A model generated the notes under the pieces. It was not told the origin of the DNA, searched no databases, and saw only the letters and a list, made by a program, of their open reading frames with translations. The position numbers and the translations under genes were made by a program. DNA of 64,000 bases, from assembly GCA_965603825.1 (NCBI GenBank), contig CBFDEM010000037.1, positions 62,001 through 126,000 of the forward strand, written 5' to 3'. Shown in pieces: positions 1 through 58,405 of this stretch; the first letter of the stretch is position 1; each line of letters begins with the position of its first letter. The stretch comes from Blepharisma stoltei ATCC 30299 (taxonomy: Eukaryota > Protista > Ciliophora).

Positions 1-3000
1 CTCAAACCGGAGTCTGCTCATGTGCTGACGGCCAATACTTTAACTCTACCCTTTCCAAATGCACAACTTGCAATGGTCTCTGCGACACCTGCTCCTCATA
101 CTCAACCTGCATAACTTGTGTTGATAAGACAAACCCAATCTCCAATGGTGTATGCACATGTGCAAACGGATACTATGCCTTAGATAAACAATGTGTTAAG
201 TGTCCTTCCCCATGCTCAACTTGTTCCAGCGCCACAGTATGTACTGGTTGTAAGAAACACGCAACTCTAAATAACTCAAGCAAAAAATGCACTTGTGACA
301 GAGGCTATGGCCTTAATAGCACTGATACTTCTGGATATTGTGTTGCTACTTGTAATAAGCTTTGCACTGTTTGTGACATTGATAATGCCAATCTTTGCTC
401 TAGTTGTGTGACAAATGCTGAGCTTACAGGAACAGCTTGTGCTTGTACTGCTAATTCTGCATATAGTAGTGCAGCTGGAGGGTGCGCTTGCAATGCAGGG
501 TATACTTTGTCAAATAGTAAGTGTGTGGTATGCAAGAGGTATCTTGCACCAAGTGACTTATTGTCTGCTGAATTCAGCTCGTCGTGGACGTCAATTTCTA
601 TTAATTTCAATACAAAGGTGGACACCTCAGTTGACCCGTCCTGCTCGAAAACTTTCACCGCAGCAACAGTAGCCTTGTTTGGAACTGGTGCAGTTTGCTC
701 ATGGACTGATAAAAAGACACTCAAAATAGCGTTAGGCACTGGCTTTTCACTGAGGTATAGCACTCTTTATTTGGATGGGACTTATATTCTGAAAGATTCT
801 ACTGATCCTTGCACTACTAACTATCAGCCTCTTTCGCTGAATCCAACAGCTACATCTAGTCCTGTTCCAGCAGCAGTTATAACTGGCCAATCCAGCTTTA
901 CTTTAGGCTGCGGATCTGATCCTCTTACATTCTCTGGTGACAAATCTACAGGATCTCTAGGAAATAATTTATCTTACCTCTGGGCCGTTACTTCAATATC
1001 TCCAGCTAACTCCAAAGTATCGGACGCCATCAATAAGAAAGCAACTGCTTCAATTTCTATAGACCGTTCCTACTTTGACTCAACTACCACGACTACAGTG
1101 ACTGTCAGTTTAACAGTGACCAATTTCTTGACCATTTCAAACACTGCTTCCTTTACAACCACAGTCACTGGTGGAAATGCATTGACAGTAATATTTGACC
1201 AAGGCAATACAGTCTCTATGAAATCTTCAACGTCTAAAACACTTAAAGCAAAAGTCACTTCTCTCTGTGGAACAACTACTGGAACTATCACTTGGGCATG
1301 GAGCTACGACAGCGGGCCGACAATAGACTCTGCCTCAATTCTTGCTAACGCAAATGCAGATAAGCTAACTATTAATGCGAATGCTTTGGCAGCAAGCTCT
1401 ACTCCATATGTATTTAAAGCAACTGCTTCACAAGTCAGCAATGGGTCGACAATTACAGGAAGTGCCACTATTTCAGTTACAGTAACCGCTTCACCATTAA
1501 GTGTTGGGCTATCTAAAACAAGTGGAGATGTTTCTCCTGACAGAGACTATACTGTTAACGCCCAAAATTCAAAAGACCCTGACAATCCTAGCTCGACTTA
1601 CAACGATTTCAAATATAAGTGGACTTGTTTGAATAGCTTAGATAACAGTGCATGTGTAGGAGCTGATGGCAAGACTCCTTTGAGTAGCGATACTGACTCC
1701 ACTTTGACTATTCCTTCATCACAAATGGTTAAAGGAGCCCAATGGGAGATTACTTGCACTATATCTAAAGACACAAGAACCGCATCTGCTACAATATCTC
1801 TAAATATTCTGAGCAAGACATCTGACGTCTCAATTGAAATTGAATACAAAGTCGAAAAGTTTAGCCTATCCTCGAATATTGTGATAACTGCTCAAGTCAC
1901 AGCTGCTTCTACAGCTACTTTGAAATGGACTGAAAATTCAGGATCAATCAGCATTTCTCCTAACTATTTGTCTACAATGTCTGTGCCTTCTAGTCAGCTA
2001 ATTGCAGGCTCGACCTATACATTTACCCTTACAATTACATCTAATGATGTTAGCATAACCGTTGAATATCCAGTCACCCTTAATCTTGGTGCAGTTTGTA
2101 CCAAAGATCCTAGTATAAGTCCAGATACTGGCACAGCAATCACTACAATATTTAAGCTAAGCATTGAGGACTGCTATGATAAAGACGAAGAAGACTACCC
2201 ATTATCATACACTTACTTAGACTACTCCAACAATAAAGCATACACTCTTGGCTACACCTCAGAAATTAATTCGCTCTCCACATACCTTTTCCCTCAGAAG
2301 AATACCATCACCATTCGTGTTTGTGATTACTTGAAGACTTGCAATGACTATAAGAAAGATGTCACAATTGGAAACTTTAATAGCAGGCGTTTAGAAACAA
2401 GCTCTTTAATGGATTCTTATAAAGAAAGCACGGTTGACGTTGATAATGTGCCTTCTACCATTTCGCTATTTTGCAGCTCAGCGACTATTGATAGTGATCT
2501 ATTCTCCCTTATGTGGACTGATTTGCAGAATTATATTTCCAGCAATGAGGTGAATAATGATGTATTGGAAAATGCATTAGGTGCAACTTACTCAATGACA
2601 GGCCAGACAGAACAGATGAGTGTAGACATGTTCCAGACATTTGCTTTATGGCTTTCTAAAATCATTGTGGATAACTCTGATCTTGTGCCAAGCCAAGATA
2701 ACATGAATACTATAGTGGCTCTTGCTGATAATTATTTGGCATATGGAAACATGACTGAGTTTTCTAGTCTGTCTCTTGAAGGATATATTATGAACATTGA
2801 TACATTCCTGACATATTGGGAAATAGCAGCTACTAAGGATGATTTGGTAACTCAAGGAGCTATGGATGGATCTCAAAACACTGATATAACTAAAATTTAT
2901 AAGTACAGAGACTTCCCGACCGCGATGGCCAATCAAACAGTCCCGCTCTCCAACAACCGCACTATTTCTATGCCTACAAAATTCAGCTATTCTGACACTG

Positions 3001-4325
3001 ACATCATGAATATTAAATTGCACTATTTCAACACCTCAAACGACTATTCTGACCTTGTTATGCTGAGCTTTGCACAGTCAGGAACTTATGAGAACTTAAA
3101 ACTTGAAACTACAAACGAGACGTATGTGCCATTCTCTACCACTGATTATCCAGTTATCTTGGAAATGCCGATATCTCAGAATATCACTGAAGAGTATGAA
3201 TGGACTTGCTTGTTCTATAATGAGACTAGTAAGGCATGGCTTCATGATGGCTGCACTGTAACTGAAATCAAAAATGATAGCGTTGTATTTGAAGTCTATC
3301 ACTTCTCTATGTTCAAGCTTGGACAAGCTGAACCCCAAGCTCCACCGAATCCATATCCTCAACCTTCTGGGCCTTCTTGTGGCGATAACTACGCTCCACT
3401 TTATATTCTGGTCGTCGTCCTCTTCATTTCTATGATTTTGGCTCCAATTATGATTATATATGATAGGCTTGAAAAGGTAGGAAAGACCGTGGAAGAAACT
3501 CCTCATCCTGCTCATGCTCCAAGACCTACTGAGCGAGCCTTGATGTCGCCTTCTACTGATGGCTTTGAAACTGAACAAAGAACCACAAGGCACTTCTTCA
3601 CAGGTGCTCAGCCTTCAGATTCAATCGAGCTCGCTGAAGGAGAAGAAATTGTTGAAGCATCAGAGCAAAGGAGTTCCGACAACGACAGTGACGAAATTGT
3701 AGACTCAGTAAACATTGATTTGACTGAAAACTCATATGCTCAGCCAGTTGCAACTGAAACTGAAGTAGAGAAACCTGAAGATGAGTCTAAGACAGAGCTT
3801 GCTGAATTGATTGAAGGACATTTGATATTTGGTTTGGTTTACTTCAGAAGCAACTTCTCAAGATGGGCTAGGCTATTCACGCTGACAACAATCATTATAT
3901 TTGAACTTTTACTTGAAGGATTGTTGCTATTTGGATTTGAAAACACTGACTCAGGATCCTCAGCATCCACTGAAACACTGTTCAATGACTATGAAGCTAA
4001 GTACTTCGGGTATACTATTTTGGCTCTTGCCATTGCAATTCCTATAGAAATTTTCATGATAATTGCGTTGAGTATTGATAGAACTAAAGCTCCAGCTTGG
4101 ACAGCTGCTGCAGTTGCACTAGGTATTACTATCATTATTGGCTCTATAATTGGAATTGTTATGCTTAGCTTCTCGTTCTGCTTCGAGTGGAGTGGATACT
4201 GGGCTATTTGCTTCCTCTATGGAATCTTGATACAGATATTCATATTTGAGACCTTCTACATGATTGTGAGATATTTTATTCTCCAAATGGTTCCACAGGT
4301 GGAAGAAACCAAGACTAAGGCTTAA
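1..4325 (+). CDS. Giant Cys-rich REJ/GPS 5-TM polycystin-1-like surface receptor, copy 1 (5'-partial)
   Basis: The frame is open from base 3 (QTGVCSC...) to TAA at 4323-4325. It encodes the last furin-like repeats, a Ser/Thr-rich REJ-like region, a GPS motif (CLFYNETSKAWLHDGC...YHFSMF, 3207-3314) and five hydrophobic helices. It is nearly identical to the ends of copies 2 and 3. Confidence 0.9.
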   Translation, partial: QTGVCSCADGQYFNSTLSKCTTCNGLCDTCSSYSTCITCVDKTNPISNGVCTCANGYYALDKQCVKCPSPCSTCSSATVCTGCKKHATLNNSSKKCTCDRGYGLNSTDTSGYCVATCNKLCTVCDIDNANLCSSCVTNAELTGTACACTANSAYSSAAGGCACNAGYTLSNSKCVVCKRYLAPSDLLSAEFSSSWTSISINFNTKVDTSVDPSCSKTFTAATVALFGTGAVCSWTDKKTLKIALGTGFSLRYSTLYLDGTYILKDSTDPCTTNYQPLSLNPTATSSPVPAAVITGQSSFTLGCGSDPLTFSGDKSTGSLGNNLSYLWAVTSISPANSKVSDAINKKATASISIDRSYFDSTTTTTVTVSLTVTNFLTISNTASFTTTVTGGNALTVIFDQGNTVSMKSSTSKTLKAKVTSLCGTTTGTITWAWSYDSGPTIDSASILANANADKLTINANALAASSTPYVFKATASQVSNGSTITGSATISVTVTASPLSVGLSKTSGDVSPDRDYTVNAQNSKDPDNPSSTYNDFKYKWTCLNSLDNSACVGADGKTPLSSDTDSTLTIPSSQMVKGAQWEITCTISKDTRTASATISLNILSKTSDVSIEIEYKVEKFSLSSNIVITAQVTAASTATLKWTENSGSISISPNYLSTMSVPSSQLIAGSTYTFTLTITSNDVSITVEYPVTLNLGAVCTKDPSISPDTGTAITTIFKLSIEDCYDKDEEDYPLSYTYLDYSNNKAYTLGYTSEINSLSTYLFPQKNTITIRVCDYLKTCNDYKKDVTIGNFNSRRLETSSLMDSYKESTVDVDNVPSTISLFCSSATIDSDLFSLMWTDLQNYISSNEVNNDVLENALGATYSMTGQTEQMSVDMFQTFALWLSKIIVDNSDLVPSQDNMNTIVALADNYLAYGNMTEFSSLSLEGYIMNIDTFLTYWEIAATKDDLVTQGAMDGSQNTDITKIYKYRDFPTAMANQTVPLSNNRTISMPTKFSYSDTDIMNIKLHYFNTSNDYSDLVMLSFAQSGTYENLKLETTNETYVPFSTTDYPVILEMPISQNITEEYEWTCLFYNETSKAWLHDGCTVTEIKNDSVVFEVYHFSMFKLGQAEPQAPPNPYPQPSGPSCGDNYAPLYILVVVLFISMILAPIMIIYDRLEKVGKTVEETPHPAHAPRPTERALMSPSTDGFETEQRTTRHFFTGAQPSDSIELAEGEEIVEASEQRSSDNDSDEIVDSVNIDLTENSYAQPVATETEVEKPEDESKTELAELIEGHLIFGLVYFRSNFSRWARLFTLTTIIIFELLLEGLLLFGFENTDSGSSASTETLFNDYEAKYFGYTILALAIAIPIEIFMIIALSIDRTKAPAWTAAAVALGITIIIGSIIGIVMLSFSFCFEWSGYWAICFLYGILIQIFIFETFYMIVRYFILQMVPQVEETKTKA

Positions 4326-8884: not shown

Positions 8885-8990
8885 TTTTAGACTAGGAGAT
8901 TAGTAATTTTCTTTCTATTATAAGCCAATTTTCAGTTTAATTATGTCACCATTGGAAAGACATATTAAAAAATTTCATAATAAAAATTAA

Positions 8991-11161: not shown

Positions 11162-14100
11162 ATGTCTAAGCGATTTCTTCTTTGCTTTATCGTAGCTTTT
11201 ATGCAGCTTCATGCTGCTGAAGTCGCTGATTCGAACGTTCCTCTTGCTAAAATCAGTGATAAGTTTAACTTTACGTTGACATCTGACTATGTGGCTAATG
11301 AAGACCCTCCTCCAGAAAATATACCTGTGATGAGAGAGCCTCAAGGAGCAAGGTATGAAAGAGCTCTTTCGGCCACTCCCTGCTCTCCTGGGAATTATGA
11401 CAACTCAGGTACTTGCTCCCCTTGTGGGACAATGTGCGCTTATTGTGATGACAATGGAAACTGTTTAGGCTGCCAAAACAACTATACAATGAAAATCAGC
11501 TCAAATAAAAAGGGCTGCGAGTGTAAAGATGCTACTGCTACAGCTGGAACCTGCGTTTGTCCACAAGATAATCCTTGGTTTGATGGATCGACTTGCCAAA
11601 CTTGTGAATCAGGCAGTTATTATGGAAGCTCTGGATGCATTGCTTGCTCAATATCAGGGTCTATTAGAGTTAAATCAATAATCAAAGCCAAGAAAAGTCC
11701 AAGCTGCTGTCCTGACGGCAAATATTTAGATAGCTCAACTTCAAAATGTTCAACTTGTGATACAAACTGTGAGCTTTGTGAAGATGGAACTGCTGGCCGT
11801 TGTGATAAATGCATTAATAAATTAAGGTTGGTGTCACAGGTTAAAATAAAGAAAACTTCTTGCTGTGGCGATGGACAATTTAGAAGTAGCGATGTTAGTC
11901 CATGTAAAGATTGCCCTGATAAAAATTGCAAAAACTGTGAAGACAGTGGAAGTGGGGATAATTGTCTCCAATGCAAAAAGAAATTATCCTTCAAGAATGT
12001 ACTTGGAATTAAAAAAACGTCTTGCTGTGACGAAGGATATTATGTTAGTAGTGATCAGACTTCATGTGCACTCTGCGATGATAGTGTGAATTGCAAATAT
12101 TGTGAAGACAGCGGAAAAGGGGAGACTTGCATCCAATGCTCTAATCTCTTAACGATAGCTGCCAAGCTGAGATTAAAGAAAACAACTTGCTGTCTTGATG
12201 GATATTTCATTAGCAGCACTACCACTGAATGCTCAAAATGCCCTGATGATAAATGCAAGCTCTGTGAAGATAATGGAAGTGGGGATACTTGCATTCAATG
12301 CTCCAAAATTTTAACTGTTACAGATACTTTGAGAATAAAGAAAACATCATGCTGTAGCGTTGGAAACTTTGTTAGTGACAAGCATTCTTCATGCATCGCC
12401 TGTAAAGACTCAAACTGCCAATACTGTGAGGATAGTGGAGACGGAGAAAATTGTCTTCAGTGCCCAAAGACATTTTCTTTTACAGATAAACTTCAAATAA
12501 AGAAAACTTCATGCTGTCAAGAAGGAAAATTTGTAAGCAGTGATCAGCCTTCTTGTGGAGACTGCTTTAACTTAAATTGCAAATACTGTGAAGACAGTGG
12601 AAGTGGAAAAAATTGTCTCCAATGCAAAAAGAAATTATCCTTCAAGAATGTACTTGGAATTAAAAAAACGTCTTGCTGTGACGAAGGATATTATGTTAGT
12701 AGTGATCAGACTACATGTGCACTCTGCGATGATAGTGTGAATTGCAAATATTGTGAAGACAGCGGAAAAGGGGAGACTTGCATCCAATGCTCTCATCTCT
12801 TAACGATGACTGCCAAACTGAGATTAAAGAAAACAACTTGCTGTCTTGATGGGTATTTCATTAGCAGCACTACCACTGAATGCTCAAAATGCCCTGATGA
12901 TAAGTGCAAGCTCTGTGAGGACAAAGAAAGTGGCTCAAGTTGTCTTCAATGCTTAAAGACCTTATCCTTCACAGATACACTTCAAGTAAAGAAAACTTCA
13001 TGCTGTCAAGAAGGAAAATTTGTAAGCAGTGATCAACCAACTTGTGGAGACTGCTTTAACTTAAATTGCAAATACTGTGAAGACAGTGGAAGTGGAAAAA
13101 ATTGTCTCCAATGCAAAAAGAAATTATCCTTCAAGAATGTACTTGGAATTAAAAAAACGTCTTGCTGTGACGAAGGATATTATGTTAGTAGTGATCAGAC
13201 TACATGTGCACTCTGCGATGATAGTGTGAATTGCAAATATTGTGAAGACAGCGGAAAAGGGGAGACTTGCATCCAATGCTCTAATCTCTTAACGATGACT
13301 GCCAAACTGAGATTAAAGAAAACAACTTGCTGTCTTGATGGGTATTTCATTAGCAGCACTACCACTGAATGCTCAAAATGCCCTGATGATAAGTGCAAGC
13401 TCTGTGAGGACAAAGAAAGTGGCTCAAGTTGTCTCCAATGCCATAAAACTTTATCTATTTCAGATACTTTGAATGTTAAGAAAACCACTTGTTGCGAAGA
13501 AGGAAAATTTGTTAGCTCTTCTCATTTACAATGCAAAGACTGTGCTGATTCAAATTGCAAACACTGTGAAGACAGCGGAGACGGTACAGTTTGTAAACAA
13601 TGCAAAAAGAAATTAAGCTTTACAGATACTTTGGAGATAAAGAAAACATCATGCTGTCAGGAAGGAAAATTCGTTAGCAGTACTCACACTGCATGCACAA
13701 CTTGTGATAGCCTGAATTGCAAGTACTGCGAAGATAGTGGAGACGGGCAAAAATGTCTTCAATGCTATAATCTCTTAAGCTTTAGCAGCATCCTCAAAAT
13801 AAAGAAAACGACTTGCTGCCCAGATGGACAATATGTTAGTAGCACTCAAACAACCTGCAAGCCATGTGATGACGATAAGTGCAGCATTTGTGAAGATAGT
13901 GGATCTGGCACAACTTGTCTTAAATGTTCTGGCATCTTAACTATTTCTGGCACTTTGAAAATAAAGAAAACGACTTGCTGTGAAGATGGGAAATTTGTTA
14001 GCGGCACTAATCCTACATGCACTAACTGCTTTGACAGCAACTGCAATATCTGTGAAGATAGCGGGGAAGGAAAAGTTTGTCTTGACTGTGCTAAAAAGCT

Positions 14101-33935: not shown

Positions 33936-34134
33936 GCATATATAAATTTAGTTAATTATGATGGTATGCATACTCTATTTTCAATGATGCAGTTCCATAT
34001 ATGGAGCGGAATCTAAAATAAATAATAATTTTAGACTGGGAAATTAGTAAGTTTCTTTCTATTATAAGCCAATTTTCAGTTTCAATTATGTCACAATTGG
34101 AAAGACATATTAAACAATTTCATAATAAAATTAA

Positions 34135-42300: not shown

Positions 42301-45300
42301 AGGCTACTTTGACGGTAACACCTGTCAGCTTTGTGGAACTCACTGTTCTGATTGTGACTCAAATGGATGTTCTATGTGTAAGGCTATCGACCATCTTATA
42401 GTTGATCCATCTAACCGCAAAAACTGTATTTGTGAGAGTGGATATTATTGGATTGTGGCAAATAATGACTGTGAGCAATGCCCTGAAGGAACTTACTATG
42501 ACGGAAGCAAATGCTCTAGCTGTTCTACTAACTGTAAAGCCTGCGATAATTTTACTGGGAAATGCAATACTTGCGTTGGCGGAGATAGAATGGAATTTCA
42601 TCCTACGGATGACAAAGCTTGCAGATGCAAAGGAACTCAAATTCTTAGCGGGCTGACTTGCTCTTGCAGCTCAGGGTCTTATTTTGATAACCTCACTTGC
42701 TCTCCATGCTCTGACTTATGCAGTGTCTGCACAGATTTGACAGGAGAGTGCACAAAATGCAAAGATTTATCTTTAATGACAATCGACCCACAAAACAATA
42801 AAAACTGTAAATGCAAGCATTCAGACCTAACAGTCGTATCAGGTCAGTGTGTCTGCACTGGAGGCAAACAATGGAACGGATCTGAATGCACTCTTTGTGG
42901 AAACTTCTGTAAAACTTGCGATTTAGGAAACAATGTCTGCACTGCGTGTATAGACAGCAAAAGAATGGACCCAGTAAGCAGCAGTGTTACTTGTAAATGC
43001 AAAGCTGGCTTTATAACCTCAACAACTGGCTGCACTTGTGCTGCAAGCTCTTACTATGACAACTCATCATGCTTTACTTGTGGAGATTTATGTACTTCTT
43101 GTGCAGATATTTCGGGCGATTGTACTGCTTGCAAAGACAGCACTATGGAATTCCATCCTACTAATAAGAAAATCTGTAGATGCAAAGGAACTCAGCAGTA
43201 TAGCACTGTGCTAAACACTTGTTCATGCCCAATTGGATATTTTGACGGCTCGACTTGTCAGAGCTGCACAACTCTTTGCTTAACTTGTGATTCAGCTAAG
43301 TGTTTAACTTGCCAAAATATTCCCCATCTTGTGGTTGACAACCAAAATTCTAAAGACTGCGTCTGTGCTAGTGGCTATAACTGGATTACAGCAGCGGGTA
43401 GTTGTGAGCAATGCTCTGTTGGAACTTACTACGATGGCAACAAATGTGCTAGCTGCTCGGCTATGTGTGCTACTTGCTCTGGGTTGACTGGCACTTGCGA
43501 TACTTGTAAAGACCCTGCTAGGATGGATCTTAGTGGAGCCACATGCATTTGTAAAGGAAATCAAAAGTTAGCGGGATCAACATGCTTTTGTGATGCAGGG
43601 TACTATTTTGATGGAGATACATGCGTTAAATGCTCAAACTTATGCAGTGCTTGCAATGATTATACCGGAGTATGCACAACATGTAAGGATTCGAAAATGA
43701 CATTCGACTCAAACGACAACAAAAACTGTAAATGTATTGGAGATCAGATTCTTAGTGGGGAGACTTGCACCTGCCCTAGCAACCAACAATTCAACGGAGA
43801 TGGGTGCTCTGCTTGCGGCGAATTCTGTAGTACTTGTGATGTTAATGCTAAAATCTGTAGCATTTGTATAGATGGAAATAAGATGTCACCTGTGAGTGGT
43901 ACTGTAACTTGTGCCTGCAAAGGGAATCAAATAAAAGCAAACACTGGCTGCACTTGTCCATCAGGCTCTTACTTTGACAGCACAACTTGTTCGACCTGCG
44001 GCGATTTCTGCACTACATGCACAGATTTATCAGGTGCATGCACTGTCTGTAAAAATGATAAAATGGAAGTTAGCCCTAGTAATCCGAAAGTTTGTAGATG
44101 TAAAGGAACTCAACAGTACAATCCCTTAACATCCTCTTGCTACTGTCCCACAGGATATTACGATGGCTCGACTTGTCAGAGCTGCACAACTCTTTGCTCA
44201 ACCTGTGAGTCGACCAAGTGTTTAACTTGTCAAGGTATTGCCAACCTTATAGTAGATCCTCAAAACCCAACTAATTGTGTCTGTGCCAGTGGCTACAATT
44301 GGATAACAGCAGAGGGCACTTGTCAGCAATGCTCTGTTGGAACTTACTACGATGGCAACAAATGTGCTAGCTGCGCTGCTACGTGTGCTACTTGCTCTGG
44401 GCTAACTGGTACTTGCAATACTTGCAAAGACACTGTTAGGATGGATCTTAGTGGAGCCACATGCATTTGCAAAGGAACCCAAAAACTAACTGAATCAGCA
44501 TGTTCTTGCGATGCAGGGTACTACTTTGATGGATCTACTTGTGTTCAATGCTCAAGCCTGTGCGCTTCTTGCTCCGATTACACTGGTGAATGCAAATCTT
44601 GCAAAGATTCGAAAATGACATTTGACCCTGCCAATAAGAAGAGCTGTATATGTATCGGAGATCAGACTCTTGACAATGGAGTATGCACTTGCCCTATCGG
44701 TCAACAATTTAATGGTGTCAAATGTTCTGAGTGCGGAACATTTTGCAATTCCTGCAATGTTTCAGGAAAAATATGTAACATTTGTGTTGATTCTGCAAAG
44801 ATGCTTGCAACTGCCGGAACTACTACTTGTTCATGCAAAGGCGACCAAACTGCAACAGTAAGCGGCTGTTCCTGTCCTACTGGATTTTACTTTAAAGACT
44901 CAAAATGCACTCAATGCGGCAGCTTATGTGCTTTATGTGCAGATACAACAGGAATTTGTAGCACCTGCAAGAACGATTCTACAATGGAAGTAAACCCTGA
45001 CGACACCACAACTTGCAGATGTAAAGGAACCCAGCAATACAGCAACGCATTATCGGCTTGTACTTGCCCTGTTGGCTATTTTGATAACGGCACCTGTAAG
45101 AGCTGTACAACTCTTTGCTCGACCTGTGACTCAACCAAGTGTTTAACTTGCCAATCCATTGCCCATCTTGTAGTTGACACCCAAAACCCTAAAAACTGTG
45201 TCTGTGCTGGCGGGTACAACTGGATTACCGCTAAAAGCATTTGTGAACAATGCTCTGCAGAGACCTATTACGATGGCAACAAGTGTGCAAGCTGTGGGAC

Positions 45301-48300
45301 TAATTGCGCAACTTGTTACGACGGTACTGGAATTTGCAAAACCTGTAAGAGCTCAAGAATGGAAAAAGGAGGTGACCCCACTAAATGCATTTGCAAAGGA
45401 ACTCAAAAGATAAGTGGATCAACATGCTCTTGTGATGCAGGGTACTACTTTGATGGAGATACATGTGTTCAATGCTCAGATTTATGCAATACTTGCGAAG
45501 ATTATACTGGAGTATGTAAAACATGTAAAGACTCGAAATTAATGACATTCGACTCAAACGATAATAAAAAATGCAAATGTATTGGAGATCAGACTCTTAG
45601 TGGAGATACTTGCACCTGCCTTAACAACCAACAATTCAACGGATATGTATGCTCTACTTGCGGTGAATTTTGTAATACTTGTGATGTTAATGCTAAGGTA
45701 TGCAGCACTTGTATAGATGGAAATAAGATGTCACCTGTGAGTGGTACTGTAACTTGTGCCTGCAAAGGGAATCAAATAAAAACAAACACCGGCTGCACTT
45801 GTCCGTCAGGCTCTTACTTTGACAGCACAACTTGTTCGACCTGCGGCGATTTCTGCACTACATGTACAGATACATCAGGTGCATGTACTGTCTGTAAAAA
45901 TGATAAAATGGAAGTTAACCCTAGTAATCCGAAAGTTTGTAGATGTAAAGGAACTCAACAGTACAATCCCTTAACATCCTCTTGCTACTGTCCTACTGGA
46001 TATTACGATGGCTCGACTTGTCAGAGCTGCACAACTCTTTGCTCAACCTGTGACTCGACCAAGTGTTTAACTTGTCAAGGTATTGCCAATCTTATAGTAG
46101 ACCCTCAAAACCCAACTAACTGTGTCTGTGCCAGTGGCTACAATTGGATTACAGCAGAGGGCACTTGTCAGCAATGCTCTGTTGGAACTTACTACGATGG
46201 CAACAAATGTGCTAGCTGCGCTGCTAATTGTGCAAGCTGTTATAACGGGTCTGGCACTTGTAATACTTGCAAAGACCCTGCTAAGATGGATCTTAGTGGA
46301 ATCACATGCATTTGTAAAGGAACCCAAAAGCTAACTGGATCAACATGTTCTTGTGATGCAGGGTACTACTTTGATGGATCTACTTGTGTGCAATGCTCAA
46401 ACTTATGCTCCTCTTGCTCCGATTACACTGGTGAATGCAAATCTTGCAATGATTCGAAAATGACTATTGATCCAGCCAATAAGAAGAACTGTATATGTAT
46501 CGGAGATCAGGTACTTAACAATAATATGTGTACATGCCCTGCAAGTAAACAATTTAACGGCTCTGGATGTTCTGATTGCGGGACTTTCTGTTCAACTTGC
46601 ATTGTTAGCTCTAATACCTGCAACACTTGTATAGATGGAAATAAGATGTCTCCTGTAAGCAGCACTGTAACTTGTGCCTGCAAAGGGAATCAAATATCAA
46701 CAAATGCCGGTTGCAGTTGCCCTTCAGGCTCTTACTTTGATAGCTCAACTTGCTCAACTTGCGGCGATTTATGCACTACATGCACAGATACATCAGGTGT
46801 ATGCACTGCCTGTAAGGATAGTAAAATGGAAGTGGATCCTAGTAATCAGAAAGTTTGTAGATGCAAAGGAACTCAAAAATATAGCTACGCGCTATCCTCT
46901 TGCTACTGTCCTACTGGATATTACGATGGTTCAACTTGCCAGAGCTGCACAACTCTTTGCTCAACCTGCGACTCGACTAAGTGTTTAACTTGCCAAAGTA
47001 TTGCAAACCTTATAGTAGACCCTCAAAACCCAACTAACTGTGTCTGTGCCAGCGGCTATAACTGGATTACCGCTAAAAGTACTTGCGAACCATGCCTTGT
47101 TGGTAGTTATTATGATGGCAACAAATGTGCTACCTGCTCAGATAATTGTGCAAGCTGTTACGATAGAACTGGTTTCTGTAAAGTATGCAACTCAAGATTT
47201 ACTCCAAGTACTGTCGACCCAACTAAATGCATTTGTAAAGGAACTCAAAAGATAGCCGGATCAACATGCTCTTGTGATGCAGGGTACTACTTTGATGGAG
47301 ATACATGTGTTCAATGCTCAGATTTATGCAGCACTTGTGAAGATTATACTGGAGTATGTAAAACTTGTAAAGACTCGAAATTAATGACATTCGACTCAAA
47401 CGATAATAAAAAATGCAAATGTATTGGAGATCAGATTCTTAGTGGAGATACTTGCACCTGCCCTAGCAACCAACAATTCAACGGAGATGAGTGCTCTGTT
47501 TGCGGTGTATTTTGTAGTACTTGTGATGTTAATGGTCAAGTCTGCAGCACTTGTTTAGATGGAGATAAGATGTCACCTGTGAGTGGTACTGTAACTTGTG
47601 CCTGCAAAGGGAATCAAATACCAGCAAACACTGGCTGTACTTGCCCTTCAGGCTCTTACTTTGACAGCTCAACTTGCTCGACTTGCGGCGATTTCTGCAC
47701 TACATGCACAGATACATCTGGTGTCTGCACTGCCTGTAAAGATAGTAAAATGGAGGTGGACCCTGCTAATACAAAAGCTTGCAGATGTAAAGGAACTCAG
47801 AAATATAGCTACACGCTATCTTCTTGCTATTGTCCAACTGGATACTTCGATGGCTCAACTTGTCAGAGCTGCACAGCTCTTTGCTCGATCTGTGACTCGG
47901 CCAAATGTTTAACTTGCCAGTCTATTGCAAACCTTGTAGTCGACACCCAAAACCCTAAAAACTGTGTCTGTGCAGTAGGCTATAATTGGATTACTGCAAG
48001 CAGCTCCTGTAATCAATGCTCTGTTGGAACTTACTACGATGGAAACAAATGTGCTGACTGTTCAGATAATTGTGCAAGTTGTTATAACGGCAGTGGATTT
48101 TGCGCTGTCTGCAAAGACTCAAGAATGATGATAAGCACCAGCGACCCAACAAAATGCATCTGCAAAGGAAACCAAAAATTAACTGGATCAGTATGCTCTT
48201 GCGATTCAGGCTACTACTTTGATGGCTCAAATTGTGTCCAATGCTCAAGCTTATGCACATCTTGCTCTGATTACACTGGAGAATGTCTTTCATGCAAAGA

Positions 48301-51300
48301 TTCTACAATGACTATTGATCCAGCCAATAAGAAAAACTGTATTTGTATTGGAGACCAAATTCTTGATGGTAACAACGCATGCACTTGTCTTGGAACTCAG
48401 CAATTCAATGGCGCTATATGTTCTGATTGTGGAACCTTCTGTACGACTTGCAATGTAAATCAAAATGTATGTAGTGTCTGCTTGGGAAACAGAATGGAGC
48501 CAGTAAGCAACACCGTTACTTGTGCTTGTAAAGGAAATCAGCTAGTCTCAGCCTCTGACTGCAGTTGTAAATCAGGCTTTTACTTTGACAGCACAACATG
48601 TTTGGCTTGTGGCACTTTTTGCACGACTTGTGAGGACTTAACTGGAAAATGCAATACATGTAGCTCTGCAACTATGGAAGTAAGCGACAGTGATCCAAAA
48701 ACTTGTAAATGCAAAGGAAATCAAGTATATAGCAGCGTTTTATCCTCTTGCTACTGTCCTACTGGATACTTCGATGGCTCGACTTGTCAGAGCTGCACAA
48801 CTCTTTGCTCGACCTGTGACTCAGCCAAATGTTTAACTTGTCAGTCTATTGCAAACCTTATAGTAGACCCTCAAAACCTAACTAAATGTGTCTGTGCAGC
48901 AGGCTATAACTGGATTACCGCAACCAGCAGCTGTGAGGTATGCGAAACTGGAACTTACTTTGATGGAAACAAATGTGCTAGCTGCACAACGAATTGTGCA
49001 AGTTGTTATTACGGCACTGGATTCTGTGCTTTATGCAAAGACGTCAGAATGACAATAAATACAAATGACTTGACGAGCTGCATCTGCAAAGGAAACCAAA
49101 AGATTAGTGGATCTACATGCTACTGCGATTCAGGCTACTACTTTGATGGCTCAAATTGTGTCCAATGCTCAAGCTTATGCACATCTTGCTCTGATTACAC
49201 TGGAGAATGTCTTTCTTGCAAAGGTTCGAAAATGACTATTGATCCAGCCAATAAGAAAAACTGTATTTGTATTGGAGACCAAATTCTTGACGGTAACAAC
49301 GCATGCACTTGTTCTGGAACTAAACAGTTTAATGGCAAGGAATGCGTGGACTGCGGATATTTCTGTAGCACTTGTGATGTATCTGGAAATACATGTAATA
49401 CCTGTATTGACTCAGTCAGAATGGAACAAGTAAGTAACACTCTTACCTGCCAATGCAAAGGAAACCAAACGAAAAATATTGGCTCTTGCACTTGTCCTTC
49501 AGGCAACTATTTCGACAATTCAAATTGTGAAGCTTGTGGCGATTTATGTGCTGCATGCGATGACTCAACTGGAAAATGCAATACATGTATAAACACTGCA
49601 ACTATGGAAATAAGCAGCACTGATTCAAAGACTTGTAAATGCAAAGGAACTCAGCAATATAGCAGTTTAACGAAATCTTGTTCCTGCACTTTAGGCTACT
49701 TCGATGGCTCAACTTGTCAGAGCTGCACAACTCTTTGTTCTTCTTGCAATGCAATTAAGTGTTTAGCTTGTCTAAGTATTACCAATCTTGAAGTAGATCC
49801 TACCAACCCAACAACTTGTCATTGCGCCGCTGGATATAACTGGATCACTGCGACTAGCACTTGCGAGCAATGCCAAACTGGAACTTATTATGATGGAGAT
49901 AAATGCGCTCCTTGCTCTACTAACTGTGCAAAATGCTATAATGGCTCTGGAATCTGCAGCGTCTGCGTAGATACAAGAATGGATATTAGCTTAAATGATT
50001 TGACTAGTTGTGCATGTAGAGGAAACCAAAAGATCAGCGGATCCACATGTTCTTGCGACTCAGGCTATTACTTTGATGGTTCCAATTGCGTGAAATGCTC
50101 TGACTTGTGCGCTACTTGCCTTGATTACACTGGAATTTGTACAGCATGCAAGGATTCTGCGAAGATGACCTTTGATACAGCAAACAAGAAGAATTGCAAG
50201 TGCATTGGAGATCAAGTACTTAGCAACAATGTATGTACTTGCACTGGAAATAAACAATTCAATGGCTCTGGGTGCTCTGATTGCGGAACGTTCTGCTCCG
50301 CTTGCAATGTAAACACGAAGATCTGCAACACTTGTATTGATACAGTTAAAATGACAGCAGTTTCTGGCACAGTAACTTGCACATGCAAATCTGGTCAGCA
50401 AGTCACAGCGACAGGCTGCATTTGTGCTTCAGGATCATATTTCGACACTACAACGTGTTCAGCCTGTGGTAACTTATGTGCTACATGTGCTGAAACAACT
50501 GGGCAATGTTTAACATGCAAAAACTCGGTAACTATGGAATTCGGCACTGATCCAAAGACTTGCAAATGTAAAGGCACTCAGCAGTACAACAGTGAAACAG
50601 CTTTATGTTACTGCGCTTCAGGTTACTTCGATGGCTCAACTTGTCAGAGTTGCTCTGCCCTTTGCTCTACATGCGATTCTAGTAAGTGCTTAACTTGTCA
50701 AAATATTGCTAACCTTGAAGTTGATCTTACGAACCCTAAGACTTGCCATTGTGCGGCTAGCTATAAATGGATAGTAGCAACTAGTACCTGTGAGCAATGC
50801 GCTACCGGAACTTATTATGATGGGAGCCAATGTACTTCCTGCTCTACCAATTGCGCAAGCTGCTTTGATGGGCTTGGAATATGCGGGAAATGCACTGATT
50901 CAAGAATGACACCAAACCTACTTGACTTAACTAAATGCATTTGTAAAGGAAACCAAATTGCCAGTGGATCAACATGCACCTGTGACTCAGGGTTCTACTT
51001 CAATGGCGAAAATTGTGTGCAATGCTCCAGCTTATGCAGCTCTTGTTTAGATTACTCTGGGCAGTGCACATCGTGCAAAAATTCTCAAACAATGATATTC
51101 GACCCAGACAGCAATAAAGCTTGTAAATGCATAGGTGATCAGTACCTTAGCAATGGTGTATGCGCTTGTGATGCTGGCAAACAATTTAATGGTGAAATTT
51201 GCTCTACCTGCGGTAAATTTTGTAAAACTTGCAATGTCGCAGCAAATTCCTGTAGCGCCTGCATAAATGATAGCACAATGACAACAGTTGCTAGCACGTT

Positions 51301-54300
51301 AACTTGCTCATGTAGACCTCGTCTAAATACCATAGCAACAGGCTGCACCTGCAATTCAAACTTTTACTTTGACGGCTCCACATGTTCTGCCTGTGGAGGT
51401 TTATGCGATACTTGCACTGATATCTCTGGAAAATGTAACGCATGCAAAAATATGGCAAATATGGAATTCACTGCTGATCAAAAGAATTGCAGATGTAAAG
51501 GCACTCAACTGTACAGCGTGTCAAAAGCTTTATGCTACTGCGCTTCAGGTTACTTCGATGGCTCTACTTGCCAGAGGTGTTCTGCCCTTTGCTCAACTTG
51601 TAATTCTGCTACGTGCTTAACTTGTCAAGCCATCGACAATCTTGTAGTTGACTCCACGAATCCAAAAACTTGCAAATGTGCCAGCGGATACAAATGGATT
51701 GTAGAAGGTAACACCAGCATCTGCGGGAAATGTTTAGCTGGCACTTATTATGATGGAACCAAATGCTCTAGCTGTTCAACCAACTGTGCTACATGTTATG
51801 AAGGAGCTGGACTATGTGAAACCTGCAGTGACTCTTTGAGAATGCAAAAGAATCCAAGTGACTTAAGTAAATGTATTTGCAAAGGAAACCAAAAGGTCAC
51901 TGGATCAACATGCACTTGCGATGCAGGCTACTATTTTGATGGTGACAATTGTGTCCAATGTTCAGACTTATGCAAAACCTGCAAAGATTACACTGGTGAG
52001 TGTCAGGGGTGTATTGATTCAAGTAAGATGATAATTGACACAGCAAATAAGAAAAACTGTAAATGCATAGGCGATCAAACTCTTTCTAATAAGCAATGCA
52101 TTTGTTCAGGAACTAAGCAATTCAACGGTTCTGTATGCTCTGATTGCGGCTATTTCTGCAGCACTTGTAACACTGGAACTAAGACATGCTTAACTTGTGT
52201 TGATTCTAGGAGAATGTCACCAGTCAGCGGCACCACTACTTGTGCATGCAAGTCAGGCCAAATTACAAATCTTAACTCTTGCTCCTGTACCTCTGGCTCT
52301 TACTTTGATGACACAACATGTCCTAGCTGCCAAAACAAATGTGTAAGCTGTAAAAGCTTGTGTGCTACCTGCGATGATTACACTGGAAATTGTCAAACTT
52401 GTAAAGACACTGAAAGAATGGATCCTGACCCAGCAGATAAAACAAATTGCAAATGTAGAGGAACCCAACAGCTTGTCATTGCAACCTCTAGTTGCATCTG
52501 TGCAGCAGGTACCTATTATAATGGAGCTACATGTCTTAAATGCGGAGATCGTTGTGCCACATGTGAGGACTACACTGGAAATTGCAAGACTTGCCTTGAT
52601 CCTTCCAGAATGGACCTTTCTGATAAGATTTGCCAATGCAAAGGAAGCCAGCAATCAAATCCTGACGCATGTTCTTGTCTTTCAATGGAATACTTTGACG
52701 GATCAACTTGTCAATCTTGTGGCAAAAACTGTAAGACTTGCAAAGATACGACTGCAGAATGCACGACATGTTATAGTAATTATGCCCTTGAACAAATAGC
52801 TCTCCCATTAGTATGTTCTTGTCCTGCTAAAACCTATGATGTCATTTCAGGCTGCAATCCTTGTGGAACAATGTGTGCTTCTTGTTTGAATGCAGGAGTT
52901 TGTTCAACTTGCAACGATAATACAGCTCAAGAACTAGACCAAAATAATAACCAGAACTGTAAATGTAAAGCTGCTAACTACTATGATGGCACAACCTGCA
53001 AGAGCTGTGGAACTTACTGTGCTGCATGTGAAGCAACCAAATGTACTCAATGTGTGGACACAGATAATATGATTTACAATGCTATTAACGCTCGCAACTG
53101 TGAATGCAAACTCGGAATGTACTATGACGCTAATTCAGGCAAATGCGTCAGTTGTATGGATAAATGCAATGTTTGTAGCAGTGGCACAAGCTGTACTACT
53201 TGTGAAAGCGGATATTATTTCGATGTGCCTACGTCTAGCTGTAAAGTGACTACATGTGACTCTGGAACTTATTATGATGAAAACTCATGTAAAGCATGTA
53301 CTGCTCCTTGTTTGGATTGCTCGAGCTCAACTTTCTGTTATACTTGTATTACAGCTGACTTTTCAATTGACGCCAGAGCTGGAACTTGTAACTGTGTGGC
53401 TGGTAAATATTATAGGTCTTCTAGTAAGACTTGTGAGCTCTGTGGACAATACTGCTCAACTTGTACAGGAGCAGCTGATTTCTGCTCAACTTGTATTGAT
53501 TCTACTATGACTTATAATGCAGTCACAGGAGTGTGCACATGTCCAGCGAAAACTTATTTCAGTGAAGGAGTTTGTAAGAGCTGTGCGGATCCTTGCTCGA
53601 ATTGTAGCAGCCTGACGTTCTGTTTAAGCTGTGTGGATGCTACAATGACTTTGACTGCAACTACTGGAGTTTGCAGGTGTAAGGATGGAACTTATTTTGA
53701 TTCAACAAGTCATAAGTGTTTGGCTTGCGATGCTACATGTGCTACCTGCTCTAGCTCATCAAGTTGCTCTACTTGCAAAGATCCTACAATGTCTATTAGT
53801 GCTGGTGTTTGTACTTGTCCTGCTCGCCAATATTTCGACACTCAATCTCTGTCCTGCAAGAACTGCGATGCTACCTGTGGAAAATGCACAAGCTCTTCTT
53901 CATCATCTTGCACTGCTTGTAGAGATGCAGCTATGGCTTTGACCAACGGAGTTTGTACTTGTCCAAGCACCCAATATTTCAATTTGGTTACAAACGCCTG
54001 TAAGACCTGCACTGGACCTTGCAAGAGCTGTACTTCTGATACTTTCTGCACATCTTGTCTTGATACAGCTACTCTCAATTCTCAAACTGGAGTCTGCTCA
54101 TGTGCTGACAAACAATACTTTAACTCTACCCATTCCAAATGCACAACTTGCAATGGTCTCTGCAACACCTGTTCCTCATACTCAACCTGCATAACTTGTG
54201 TTGATAAGACAAACCCAGTCTCCAATGGTGTATGCACATGTGCAAACGGATACTATGCTTTAGACAAGCAATGTGTTATGTGTCCTTCCCCATGTTCAAC

Positions 54301-57300
54301 TTGTTCCAGCGCCACAGTATGTACTGGTTGTAAGAAACACGCAACTCTAAATAACTCAAGCAAGAAATGCACTTGTGACAGAGGCTATGGCCTTAATAGC
54401 ACTGATACTTCTGGATATTGTGTTGCTACTTGTAATAAGCTTTGCACTGTTTGTGACATTGATAATGCCAATCTTTGCTCTAGTTGTGTGACAAATGCTG
54501 AGCTTACAGGAACAGCTTGTGCTTGTACTGCTAATTCTGCATATAGTAGTGCAGCTGGAGGGTGCGCTTGCAATGCAGGGTATACTTTGTCAAATAGTAA
54601 GTGTGTGGTATGCAAGAGGTATCTTGCACCAAGTGACTTATTGTCTGCTGAATTTAGCTCGTCGTGGACGTCAATTTCTATCAATTTCAATACAAAGGTG
54701 GACACCTCAGTTGACCCGTCCTGCTCGAAAACTTTCACCGCAGCAACAGTAGCCTTGTTTGGAACTGGTGCAGTTTGCTCATGGACTGATAAAAAGACAC
54801 TCAAAATAGCGTTAGGCACTGGCTTTTCACTGCGGTATAGTACTCTTTATTTGGATGGAACTTATATTCTGAAAGATTCTTCTGATCCTTGCACTACTAA
54901 CTATCAGCCTCTTTCGCTGATTCCCACATCTACATCTAGTCCTGTTCCAACAGCGATTATAACTGGCCAATCCAGCTTTACTTTAGGCTGCGGATCTGAT
55001 CCTCTTACTTTCTCTGGTGACAAATCTACAGGATCTCTAGGAAATAATTTATCTTACCTCTGGGCTGTTACTTCAATATCTCCAGCTAACTCCAAAGTAT
55101 CGGACGCCATCAATAATAAAGCAGATTCTTCAATTTCTATAGACCGTTCCTACTTTGATTCAACTACCACGACAACAGTGACCGTTAGCTTAACAGTGAC
55201 CAATTTCATGACCATTTCAAGCACTGCTTCCTTTACAACCACAGTCACTGGTGGAAATGCATTGACAGTGATATTTGACCAAGGCAATACAGTTTCTATG
55301 AAATCTTCAACGTCTAAAACACTTAAAGCAAAAGTCACTTCTCTCTGCGGAACAACTACTGGAACTATCACTTGGGCATGGAGCTATGACAGTGGACCGA
55401 CAATAGACTCTGCCTCAATTCTTGCTAACGCAAATGCAGATAAGCTAACTATTAATGCGAATGCTTTGGCAGCAAGCTCTACTCCATATGTATTTAAAGC
55501 AACTGCTTCACAAGTCAGCAATGGGTCGACAATTACAGGAAGTGCCACTATTTCAGTTACAGTCACTGCTTCAGCATTAAGTGTTGGGCTATCTAAAACA
55601 AGTGGAGATGTTTCTCCTGACAGAGACTATACTATTAACGCCCAAAATTCAAAAGACCCTGACAGTCCTAGCTCAACTTACGAAGATTTTACTTATAAGT
55701 GGACTTGTTTGAATAGCTTAGATAACAGTGCATGTGTAGGAGCTGACGGCAAGACTCCTTTGAGTAGCGATACTGATTCCACTTTGACTATTCCTTCATC
55801 ACAAATGGTTAAAGGAGCTCAATGGGAGATTACTTGCACTATATCTAAAGACACAAGAACCGCTGCTGCTACAATATCTCTAAATATTCTGAGCAAGACA
55901 TCTGATGTCTCAATTGAAATTGAATACAAGGTCCAAAAATATAACCCGAACTCCAATATTGTGATAACTGCTCAAGTCACAGCTGCTACTTCAGCTACCT
56001 TGAAATGGGCTGAAAGTTCAGGGTCAATCAGCATTTCTCCTGGTTATTTGTCTACAATGTCTGTGCTTCCTAGTCAGTTAACTGCGGGCTCGACATATAC
56101 ATTTACCCTCACAATTACATTGAATGATGTCAGCATTAATGCTGAATATCCAATCACCCTTAATCTTGGGGCAGCTTGTACAGGAGAAGTTAAACTAAAT
56201 CCAGAAACCGGCACAGCGATCACTACATCATTTAAGCTAAGCATTGAGGGCTGCTATGATAAAGATGAAGAAGACTACCCATTATCATACACTTATTTAG
56301 ACTACTCCAACAATAAAGCATACACTCTTGGCTACACCACAGAGATAAATTCGCTCTCCACATACCTTTTCCCTCAGAAGAATACAATCACCATTCGTGT
56401 TTGTGATCACTTGAAGACTTGCAATGACTATAAGAAAGATGTCACAATTGGAAACTTTAATAGCAGGCGTTTAGAAACAAGCTCTTTAATGGATGCTTAT
56501 AAAGAAAGCACGGTTGACGTTGATAATGTGCCTTCTACAATCTCGCTATTTTGCAGCTCTGCAACTATTGATAGTGAGCTATTCTCCCTTATGTGGACTG
56601 ACTTGCAGAATTATATTTCCAGCAATGAGGTGACTAATGATGTATTGGAAAATGCATTAGGTGCAACTTACTCAATGACAGGTCAGACAGAACAGATGAG
56701 TGTAGACATGTTCCAGACATTTGCTTTATGGCTTTCTAAAATTATTGTGGACAACCCTGATCTTGTGCCAAGCCAAGATAACATGAATACTATTGTGGCT
56801 CTTGCTGATAATTATTTGGCGTATGGAAACATGACTGAGTTTTCTACTCTGTCTCTTGAAGGATATATTATGAATATTGATGCATTCCTGGCATATTGGG
56901 AAATAGCAGCTACTAAGGATGATTTGGTAACTCAAGGAGCTATGGACGGATCTCAAAACACTGATATGACTAAAATTTATAAGTACAGAGACTTCCCAAC
57001 CTCGATGGCCAATCGCACAGTTCCGTTCTCCAACAACCGCACTATTTCTATGCCTGCAAAATTCAGCTACTCTGACAATGACGTCATGAATATTAAACTG
57101 CACTATTTCAACACCTCAAACGACTATTCTGACCTTGTTATGCTGAGCTTTGCACACTCAGGAACTTATGAGAACTTAAAACTCGAAACCACAAACGAGA
57201 CCTATATGCCATTCTCTACAACTGATTATCCAGTTATCTTGGAAATGCCGATATCTCAGAATATCACTGAAGGGTATGACTGGACTTGCTTGTTCTATAA

Positions 57301-58405
57301 TGAGACTAGTAAGGCATGGCTTCATGATGGCTGCACTGTAACTGAAATCAAAAACGATAGCGTTGTATTTGAAGTCTATCACTTCTCTATGTTCAAGCTT
57401 GGACAAGCCGAACCCCAAGCTCCACCAAATCCATATCCTCAACCTTCTGGGCCTTCTTGTGGCGATAACTACGCTCCACTTTATATTTTGGTCGTCGTCC
57501 TCTTCATTTCTATGATTTTGGCTCCAATTATGATTATATATGATAGGCTTGAAAAGGTAGGAAAGACCGTTGAAGCAACTCCTCACCCTACTCATGTTCC
57601 AAGACCTACTGAGCGAGCCTTGATGTCGCCTTCTACTGATAGCGTTGAAACTGCACCAAGAAGCGCAAGACACTTCTTCCAGGGTACTCAGCCTAGAGAG
57701 TCAATCGAGCTTGCTGACGGCGAAGAAATTGTTGAAGAGTCAGAACAAAGGAGTTCAGATGACGACAGTAACGACATTGTTGACTCAGTAAGCATTGATT
57801 TGACTGAAAACTCATATGCTCAGCCAATCGCAACTGAAACTGAAGTAGAGAAGCCTGAAGATGAGTCTAAGACTGAGCTTGCTGAGCTCATTGAAGGACA
57901 TTTGATATTTGGTTTGGTTTACTTCAGAAGCAACTTCTCAAGATGGGCTAGACTATTCACACTGGCAACAATCATTATATTTGAACTTTTACTTGAAGGA
58001 TTGTTGCTATTTGGATTTGAAAATACTGACTCAGGATCCTCAGCATCCACTGAAACCCTGTTCAATGACTATGAAGCTAAGTACTTCGGGTATACTATTT
58101 TGGCTCTTGCCATTGCAATTCCTATAGAAATTTTCATGGTAATTGCGTTGAGCATTGATAGAACTAAAGCTCCAGCTTGGACAGCTGCTGCAGTTGCGCT
58201 AGGTATTACTATCATTATTGGCTCTATAATTGGAATTGTTATGCTTAGCTTCTCGTTCTGCTTCGAGTGGAGTGGATACTGGGCTATTTGTTTCCTCTAT
58301 GGAATCTTGATACAGATATTCATATTTGAGACCTTCTACATGATTGTGAGATACTTTATTCTCCAAATGGTTGCACAGGTGGAAGAAACCAAGACTAAGG
58401 CTTAA
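36359..58405 (+). CDS. Giant Cys-rich REJ/GPS 5-TM polycystin-1-like surface receptor, copy 3 (7,348 aa; alternative ATG at 36344; one in-frame TGA)
   Basis: ORFs 36344-40765 and 40826-58405 are in frame, and the gap is open and colinear with copy 2 (..IELE*DLIDPATCCG..). The TGA at 40763-65 replaces GGA of copy 2 (16388-90), and a sibling repeat has TGG at the equivalent position (ALEWSLIDP, 39683-85). GPS is at 57287-57394. Confidence 0.85.
36887..38518 (+). repeat. KKT[ST]CC-type ~54-aa coding repeat, 10 units plus one KKSPSCC variant
   Basis: Units were counted in the translation. There are five fewer than in copy 2. Confidence 0.9.
40950..52250 (+). repeat. Higher-order ~308-aa coding repeat, 12 units; boundaries approximate
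   Basis: The marker Trp recurs at 41510, 42449, 43382, 44300, 45221, 46145, 47063, 47987, 48911, 49841, 50768 and 51695. Confidence 0.9.

Follow-up and report, generated by a model that had tools for sequence, protein, structure and literature searches.

Tandem giant genes of the ciliate Blepharisma stoltei encode probable membrane proteins related to the N-terminal half of polycystin-1

We analysed a stretch of 64,000 nucleotides (hereafter the window) from the genome of the ciliate Blepharisma stoltei ATCC 30299, positions 62001-126000 of contig CBFDEM010000037.1 (C37 below), which carries a tandem array of three giant genes, A, B and C. It is very probable that these genes encode giant membrane proteins, with the N-terminus outside, that are related to polycystin-1, a protein of human kidney disease, and to the sperm receptor for egg jelly. 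The order of parts is common to the copies: a signal peptide, a rod rich in CxxC motifs, a REJ module, a GAIN domain, five transmembrane (TM) helices and a very short tail, with Cys making up 13% of the protein residues. An earlier note on this DNA, written from the letters of the sequence, had described three tandem paralogues with a Cys-rich stalk behind a signal peptide, a REJ-like region, a GPS, TM1, an acidic loop and four more TM helices; the open frames, the count of CxxC motifs and the TM scan put the signal-peptide-like N-terminus, TM1, the loop and the four later helices in the places claimed.

The somatic genome (64 contigs, 41.46 Mb) is a Flye assembly of PacBio HiFi reads; in B. 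stoltei UGA is read as Trp and introns are mostly 15-16 bp long (PMC9942806). Only TAA and TAG were counted as stops; TGA was read through (table 4) in codon counting, in alignment and in estimating the ratio of non-synonymous to synonymous substitution rates (dN/dS). Proteins with in-frame TGA were searched as pieces, and the joined copy A carried X at each break. With these stops the scan revealed three giant open frames on the + strand of the window, each terminated by TAA. Copy A enters the window with its C-terminal 1,440 codons (3..4325, +, off the left edge), which cover the end of the rod, REJ, GAIN/GPS and TM1-5 up to the TAA, as seen from the open frame, the TM scan and the Pfam REJ match. 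Copies B (11162..31249, +; 6,695 codons) and C (36344..58405, +; 7,353 codons) are complete, in agreement with the 6,700-7,350 amino acids (aa) given in the earlier note, and re-translation with TGA as Trp, which that note had advised, carries both frames on through one TGA each. The TGA of copy B (29573-29575) pairs with TGG in both A and C in the alignment of paralogues; the TGA of copy C (40763-40765) pairs with GGA in B, and 5,880 more open codons lie beyond it.

The membrane end and its relation to polycystin-1

The Pfam REJ model (PF02010) matched the array genes with E-values from 1.6e-26 (copy A) to 4e-30 (copy B), at 93-105 bits versus a cut-off of 25. In copy B the REJ module, a run of PKD/Ig-like beta sandwiches, spans 27647..29311 (+). 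A profile of the family defined below matched the PKD domains of KIAA0319L (E 2.7e-15) and the GPS region of CELSR1 (E 0.008); a single-sequence search of solved structures gave no match. An AlphaFold2 model of the last 1,200 aa, made from a 49-sequence alignment with no templates, had a mean predicted local distance difference test score (pLDDT) of 82.6. It is laid out as beta sandwiches (residues 1-555), seven helices (559-703) and a beta domain (723-869) ending at a His-Phe-Ser triad (860-862) plus one last strand; in the GAIN region pLDDT is about 90. On the DNA of copy B the GAIN domain occupies 29321..30253 (+), with the helical subdomain A at 29321-29755 and the beta subdomain B at 29813-30253. 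The triad, which marks the GPS, is located at 30224..30232 (+) in the turn before the last beta strand, with a putative autoproteolysis site between Phe and Ser.

When the whole 1,200-aa model was submitted to Foldseek, the list of matches was filled by multi-Ig chains and was silent on the GAIN and TM parts; an exhaustive structural alignment against 48,161 solved chains was used instead. The best of these chains for the five-helix bundle was human polycystin-1 TM1-5 (8z6b_A, PC1/PC2 complex), with Z 18.6 and a root-mean-square deviation (rmsd) of 3.5 Å over 184 residues, model residues 884-1182 being superposed on chain residues 3069-3610; this Z is well over the aligner's level for chance helical bundles. 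The region at model residues of about 585-870 showed the GAIN fold, with Z 12.5-14.3 to CD97, CELSR1, GPR110, GPR126, GPR56, BAI3 and latrophilin-3. By shape, the nearest clusters in the ESM Atlas were animal ‘sperm receptor for egg jelly’ proteins with REJ and with REJ+GPS (template-modelling scores of 0.68 and 0.58 by target), and by language-model features the nearest cluster was a GPS-domain family (score 0.94). At the level of the predicted model, the membrane end is shown to be homologous in fold to TM1-5 of polycystin-1, the half without the channel part. The polycystin-type order of REJ, GAIN/GPS and several TM helices, as well as the resemblance to PKD1 that a structural model had been expected to bring out, was borne out by these comparisons.

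TM1 of copy B (30317..30409, +; hydropathy 2.93) corresponds to model helix 891-921. It is followed by a disordered, net-acidic and predicted cytoplasmic loop (30413..30709, +), about 100 residues of the model at pLDDT 31-38, in the place where polycystin-1 has PLAT; the TM1-TM2 loop measures 138 aa and has 28 D+E versus 15 K+R. TM2-TM5 (30785..31213, +), four helices within model residues 1047-1189, form together with TM1 the polycystin-1 TM1-5-like bundle, and the stop is found 11 codons past the model's last helix. In all three copies the frame ends with TAA about 10 residues past TM5. The corresponding parts of copy C, all on the + strand, are REJ 54803-56467, GAIN 56477-57409, His-Phe-Ser 57380-57388, TM1 57473-57565 and TM2-5 57941-58369.

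The earlier note had called these proteins ‘half’ polycystin-1, and this name was upheld. No PLAT match was seen in the array genes or in the whole genome, in a search that had no positive control; Pfam gave no PKD_channel match in the array genes; and the frame stops after TM5, an ending shared by 63 relatives. The possibility of a degenerate PLAT between TM1 and TM2 was ruled out by the disorder of the loop together with the negative genome search. A hidden channel exon past the stop was ruled out as well, since no open reading frame (ORF) follows and contigs of probable RNA runs end there. Nor did we find the seven-helix domain of adhesion G-protein-coupled receptors (GPCRs): there are five helices, and the sole GPCR chain that aligned across the membrane part did so at rmsd 20.5 Å.

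Polycystin-1, PKD1-like proteins, PKDREJ and sea-urchin REJ have the same order of REJ, GAIN/GPS, TM1 and a four-helix continuation, and the same His-x-Ser/Thr at the GPS. Polycystin-1 also has PLAT, the TM6-11 half, a TOP domain and a C-terminal coiled-coil tail, all four of which are absent from the array proteins. The ectodomains are unlike each other: leucine-rich repeats, a C-type lectin domain and PKD repeats in polycystin-1, a CxxC rod of about 5,000-11,000 aa in the array. Lacking PLAT, the channel half and the C-terminal tail, the array proteins are relatives that share the N-terminal half of polycystin-1. Adhesion GPCRs (latrophilin, CD97, CELSR, GPR56) likewise carry GAIN directly before TM1 below a long modular ectodomain, and the tethered last strand is probably common to both; however, the array proteins have five helices, not seven, and no structured cytoplasmic part, only the disordered loop and the short tail.

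The GAIN region was also matched by three proteins of axonemal doublet microtubules, one each from Leishmania, bovine sperm and Chlamydomonas (9y6s_9f, 9fqr_Hn and 8glv_AE; model residues 578-882, window about 2454-3368) with Z 11.4-12.1, just under the scores of true GAIN domains. Such structural matches of a model hint at a GAIN-like fold inside cilia.

A family in heterotrich ciliates

An exhaustive HMMER search of 1.84 billion representatives yielded 305 relatives, of which 159 were retrieved. A collinear match from REJ to TM5, ending within a few residues of TM5, was observed in 63 of the 159; down to 19% identity these 63 keep the bundle at the C-terminus, with an invariant Trp and conserved charged residues in or beside the helices. 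Named members come from B. stoltei and Stentor coeruleus, the two genera in which the earlier note had proposed to survey homologs, and most relatives come from environmental assemblies; the Stentor relatives include OMJ71464 and OMJ85287. We define here a heterotrich REJ-GAIN-5TM family, of which the array genes are members. A profile search of 5.8 billion proteins was dominated by bacterial PKD-domain proteins and brought two B. stoltei paralogues as the only new members. One relative of 1,151 aa, with 52% identity, has the source label MMETSP1395; the MMETSP project consists of transcriptomes, and the taxon is presumably Blepharisma japonicum.

In the B. stoltei genome we found at least 52 REJ loci and at least 35 PKD_channel (PKD2-like) loci. 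None of the at least 35 PKD_channel loci is downstream of, or fused to, any of the at least 52 REJ loci; thus, in B. stoltei the halves of polycystin-1 occur only in separate genes. The open frames that hold other REJ loci (e.g. C25:329477-330661) reach 9,202 codons, so giants are not confined to the array, and REJ loci on contigs C25, C60, C57, C3 and C28 are clustered too.

The statement that this is not a described system holds in part. A literature search brought up no description of a REJ-GAIN-5TM protein or of the giant genes themselves. On the other hand, the B. stoltei relatives carry automatic UniProt labels (EGF-like or PKD/REJ-like domain proteins), and GAIN/GPS domains were reported in ciliates in 2012, at least eight of them in Tetrahymena according to the part of the paper by Arac et al. 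that we cite (PMC3321182). The report there is of the domain only, and REJ, a 5-TM bundle, giant size and tandem arrays do not figure in that part of it.

The tandem array and the Cys-rich rod

The genome profile search gave only three REJ matches on C37, and there are therefore exactly three array genes. The starts of B and C are 25.2 kb apart, a distance which replaces the ~27 kb estimated earlier for a unit. Divergence between the copies is 7-13% in genes and spacers alike, the spacers having been duplicated along with the genes (85-94% identity). With copies this far apart the array is not a simple duplication artefact but a segmental duplication that has diverged. In the third spacer homology ends after 1.3 kb, which defines the right edge of the duplicated unit.

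In copy B the N-terminus (11162..11218, +) looks like a signal peptide, with a basic start, a hydrophobic core and small residues before the predicted cut, as read from the translation only. The rod of B extends over 11414..27457 (+), about 5,350 aa with 285 CxxC; CxxC motifs span aa 85-5,432 in B and aa 90-6,090 in C, and across the copies the rod is about 5,350-11,000 aa long. The N-terminal 1,000 aa of the rod are built of 54-aa units. Its centre consists of ~62-aa units with eight Cys each, five per super-repeat of 306-312 aa (~308). Copies B and C are about 90% identical. Three large indels separate them (274, 313 and 614 aa); two of these correspond to one and two super-repeats and the third to five tip units. 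Since the indels are whole repeats, the length of the rod changes by gain and loss of repeats; changes by whole 308-aa super-repeats are the pattern expected from unequal recombination. These indels and the three tandem copies agree with the description of the family as amplified and length-variable.

Searched against Pfam as two 3,000-aa and nine 300-400-aa pieces (eleven in all), the rod gave no usable match, so that ‘furin-like’, one of the domain types that the earlier note had proposed to look for, is unconfirmed by sequence; REJ is the part of the proposed profile check that passed the Pfam threshold, and GPS did not reach it (see below). A 3,137-aa query lost its REJ match in Pfam, perhaps through the composition filter of HMMER. 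An AlphaFold2 model of one super-repeat (pLDDT 88.6) has short beta hairpins throughout. Foldseek returned nothing at E <= 0.001 for it, and all matches of its fold were weak (E >= 0.01): EGF-like, laminin-EGF, furin-repeat, TNF-receptor and mastigoneme modules. It is fair to say, from the model, that the rod would be a disulfide-knotted structure of the EGF/furin-repeat kind in general, with no match strong enough to assign it to one family. When extended it could measure roughly 0.3-0.7 micrometre, as estimated from the usual rise per such module.

Copy A was followed through 60 kb of sequence left of the window. Its start, which encodes the same signal peptide, is at window coordinate -33485 (C37:28516), 33.5 kb past the left edge. 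The copy covers 37.8 kb in all, and its three reading frames (about 5,630, 2,080 and 4,890 codons) make up a conceptual protein of 12,603 aa. The earlier picture of three like units is therefore true of B and C, and A departs from it. Two +1 shifts, near window coordinates -16610 and -10350, join the frames of A; each shift is one extra A relative to the paralogous repeats, and the middle of the copy holds about ten 1,848-bp repeats of 92-98% identity. Introns at the frame changes were ruled out by the single extra A, with nothing intron-like in comparison with the paralogous repeats; programmed +1 frameshifting was ruled out because no stop codon interrupts the old frame at the first junction.

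There is in our judgement an even chance that copy A, or the exact numbers of its repeats, are an artefact or that the copy is a pseudogene, so that only two genes, each for about 7,000 aa, would be functional; such an outcome concerns copy A alone and is compatible with every functional reading discussed below. That both +1 shifts come down to a single extra A, that about ten near-identical repeats are hard to polish, and that a TPR gene linked to the array has already decayed to fragments in two of the three spacers are all points in favour of decay or misassembly. However, the assembly was built on PacBio HiFi reads (PMC9942806), and all three frames of A are open over about 2,100-5,700 codons, so that any inactivation should have been very recent. 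The same follows from the tail of A: across its C-terminal 1,440 codons dN/dS is 0.27-0.31, no different from B and C.

Over 6,421 codons dN/dS between B and C is 0.32; among the tails of A, B and C (1,440 codons) it is 0.27-0.31 with dS about 0.12. As judged from the substitutions, B and C were shown to be under purifying selection (dN/dS about 0.3). The lowest dN, 0.005-0.01, was observed in TM2-5. In the rod dN/dS between B and C ranges over 0.17-0.58, with the maximum of 0.58 at the distal tip. In sliding Nei-Gojobori estimates over A, B and C, the REJ module contains a variable patch (1800..2250, +; tail aa 600-750), where dN rises up to 0.195 versus 0.01-0.05 elsewhere, with dN/dS <1.

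Evidence on expression comes from four runs of one study that we took as RNA by guess (their assemblies are about 30 Mb in size). Of the words sampled from 27001-33000, 71-76% occur in these runs, which is about the genic share of that stretch. In two of them, at 98% identity, every 200-base bin of 27001-31200 is covered, with no joints, and nothing is seen in the probable RNA runs at 31201-31600, where DNA runs do cover. This fits a transcript whose end coincides with the stop or lies just past it, and an absence of introns from the final 4.2 kb of copy B.

In the first spacer there is an 848-codon gene with TPR/Kelch motifs (4801-7347, -) and four in-frame TGA. In the second and third spacers it is reduced to fragments (32497-33066, -, and 59117-59710, -), a 189-codon N-terminal piece and a TPR piece; the gene was duplicated along with the array, and two of its three copies have decayed. 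Lys-rich short ORFs of 77-147 codons, putative as genes, are found in the first two spacers (8454-9434, +, and 33681-34530, +). Two of them, both located in the first spacer, have a common basic N-terminal stretch (a K/R run with VKNMKKRK), and an Arg/Trp-rich motif ending in WEYNG occurs in such ORFs of both spacers; one piece of them that was searched had no Pfam match. At 32041-32280, in the second spacer, two DNA runs, each belonging to a different study, have contigs that lack 238 bases, with an anchor of 20 bases on the shorter side; this could be an alternative somatic form, a strain difference or an alignment artefact.

On the right flank of the array lies a complete nicotinate phosphoribosyltransferase gene (61716-63287, -) with the N-terminal, catalytic and C-terminal domains of NAPRTase, as well as a secreted-looking ORF of 295 codons at 60417-61304 with no Pfam match. 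Some 10 kb upstream of copy A, at C37:11700-18600 (window -50261 to -43446), we observed another small tandem family, three paralogues of about 306-316 codons with a common multi-TM-looking N-terminus.

Receptor, surface coat or mating protein

We propose that the array proteins act as receptors. The GAIN domain would cut itself between Phe and Ser, leaving the huge ectodomain held non-covalently on a membrane stub, and the rod would project as a tether from the cell or ciliary surface. If the rod were pulled, whether by a partner cell, prey, the substrate or flow, either the ectodomain or the tethered last strand would be displaced, and the five-helix bundle would change in response. As the cytoplasmic side is almost only one disordered loop, the signal would most likely be handed to a separate partner, sideways in the membrane. 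The best candidate for such a partner may be one of the at least 35 PKD2-like channels, and receptor and channel would then form a polycystin complex encoded by two genes. A role in contact, mating or prey recognition could be supposed. Cleavage, force on the tether and signalling through a PKD2-like channel are all suggested by homology.

An analogy is provided by Chlamydomonas, where PKD2 holds a long Cys-rich glycoprotein hair, the mastigoneme, on the cilium, in a proposed mechanosensory arrangement (PMC7265326). The model of the rod has a weak fold match to the mastigoneme protein MST1 (E 0.06), to be taken as an analogy only; the Chlamydomonas hair is a separate polymer and not, as here, a GAIN-tethered membrane protein.

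The cleavage-plus-channel mechanism is tentative, its chances being somewhat short of even; the whole explanation, with architecture and mechanism blended, we consider slightly better than an even bet. A number of points weigh against it. In the solved human complex polycystin-1 joins the channel mainly via its TM6-11 half, which is absent here. The PKD2-like partnership is a supposition, and there is no channel gene near the array on C37. Autoproteolysis is predicted from the motif. In the array genes Pfam GPS is below threshold (14.4 versus 22.5 bits), and the residue before the putative cut is Phe, not the usual Leu, another difference from polycystin-1. The H-x-[S/T] motif of the GPS is kept in 32 of the 49 family members and lost in the others, as in uncleaved adhesion GPCRs, which leaves about a third of the family without the GPS His. 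The surface location is predicted from the signal peptide and the topology. Copy A, with its two frameshifts, may be dead or misassembled. Finally, with a label that is a guess, short contigs and 4.2 kb of one copy, the probable RNA runs fall short of proof of a full-length mRNA.

The main rival to the receptor proposal, which we find unlikely, is that the proteins are a surface coat or adhesin, a structural or adhesive filament comparable with Giardia VSPs, Paramecium surface antigens or the giant adhesins of bacteria. REJ-GAIN-5TM would then be an anchor and a shedding device working through the GPS, and tandem copies and at least 52 loci would give surface variation. The CxxC rod does make up 80-90% of the mass, its length varies between copies by whole repeats, the family is large, and there are a dN/dS peak at the distal tip (0.58) and the variable REJ patch. 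Dense CxxC repeats are also typical of Giardia VSP-type and ciliate CxxC surface proteins, and the rod of one relative (P0014) matches Pfam VSP. The array proteins themselves differ from the VSP-like class: none of their eleven rod pieces matched Pfam, and the anchor is REJ-GAIN-5TM, not a single helix. A single helix would do as an anchor, yet it is the five-helix bundle that is most conserved (dN 0.005-0.01), and this bundle stays C-terminal in the 63 relatives, invariant Trp and conserved charges included.

That the array proteins are mating-contact receptors, a ciliate counterpart of sperm REJ proteins for partner recognition in conjugation after gamone stimulation, we consider improbable. 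REJ proteins do act in sea-urchin and mouse sperm, divergence between the paralogues is fast at the tip and in one patch of REJ, and in another alveolate, Cryptosporidium, REJ-like GGC proteins mark the attachment site of male gametes (bioRxiv 10.64898/2026.10.13.757955); however, the share of the gene present is similar in each of the four probable RNA runs, and a mating system would hardly seem to require at least 52 loci.

The presence of this family in heterotrichs corrects the working assumption of ciliate physiology that ciliates have Pkd2 but no Pkd1 relative, an assumption stated for Paramecium, which is said to have no Pkd1-homologous sequences (PMC6627415). Copy A, if intact at 12,603 aa, would be among the longest proteins known to us. 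One could speculate that heterotrichs have a two-gene polycystin system, in which free-standing REJ-GAIN-TM1-5 receptors, some with half-micrometre Cys-rich tethers, gate PKD2-like channels after force-driven release at the GPS; we hold this to be doubtful. If it is true, animal polycystin-1 would have arisen when such a receptor was fused to a TRPP channel subunit, or else the ciliate form would have arisen from it by fission, and TM1-5 would be an independent signalling module rather than a mere appendage of the channel half. To our knowledge, no natural protein consisting of this half alone was available before for work on the role of TM1-5 in polycystin-1 and on the coupling of GAIN cleavage to the channel. 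The family described here shows that the N-terminal half of polycystin-1 can occur as a separate protein; it is a conserved module, kept by purifying selection, and is found in culturable organisms, including Stentor, where RNA interference is established.

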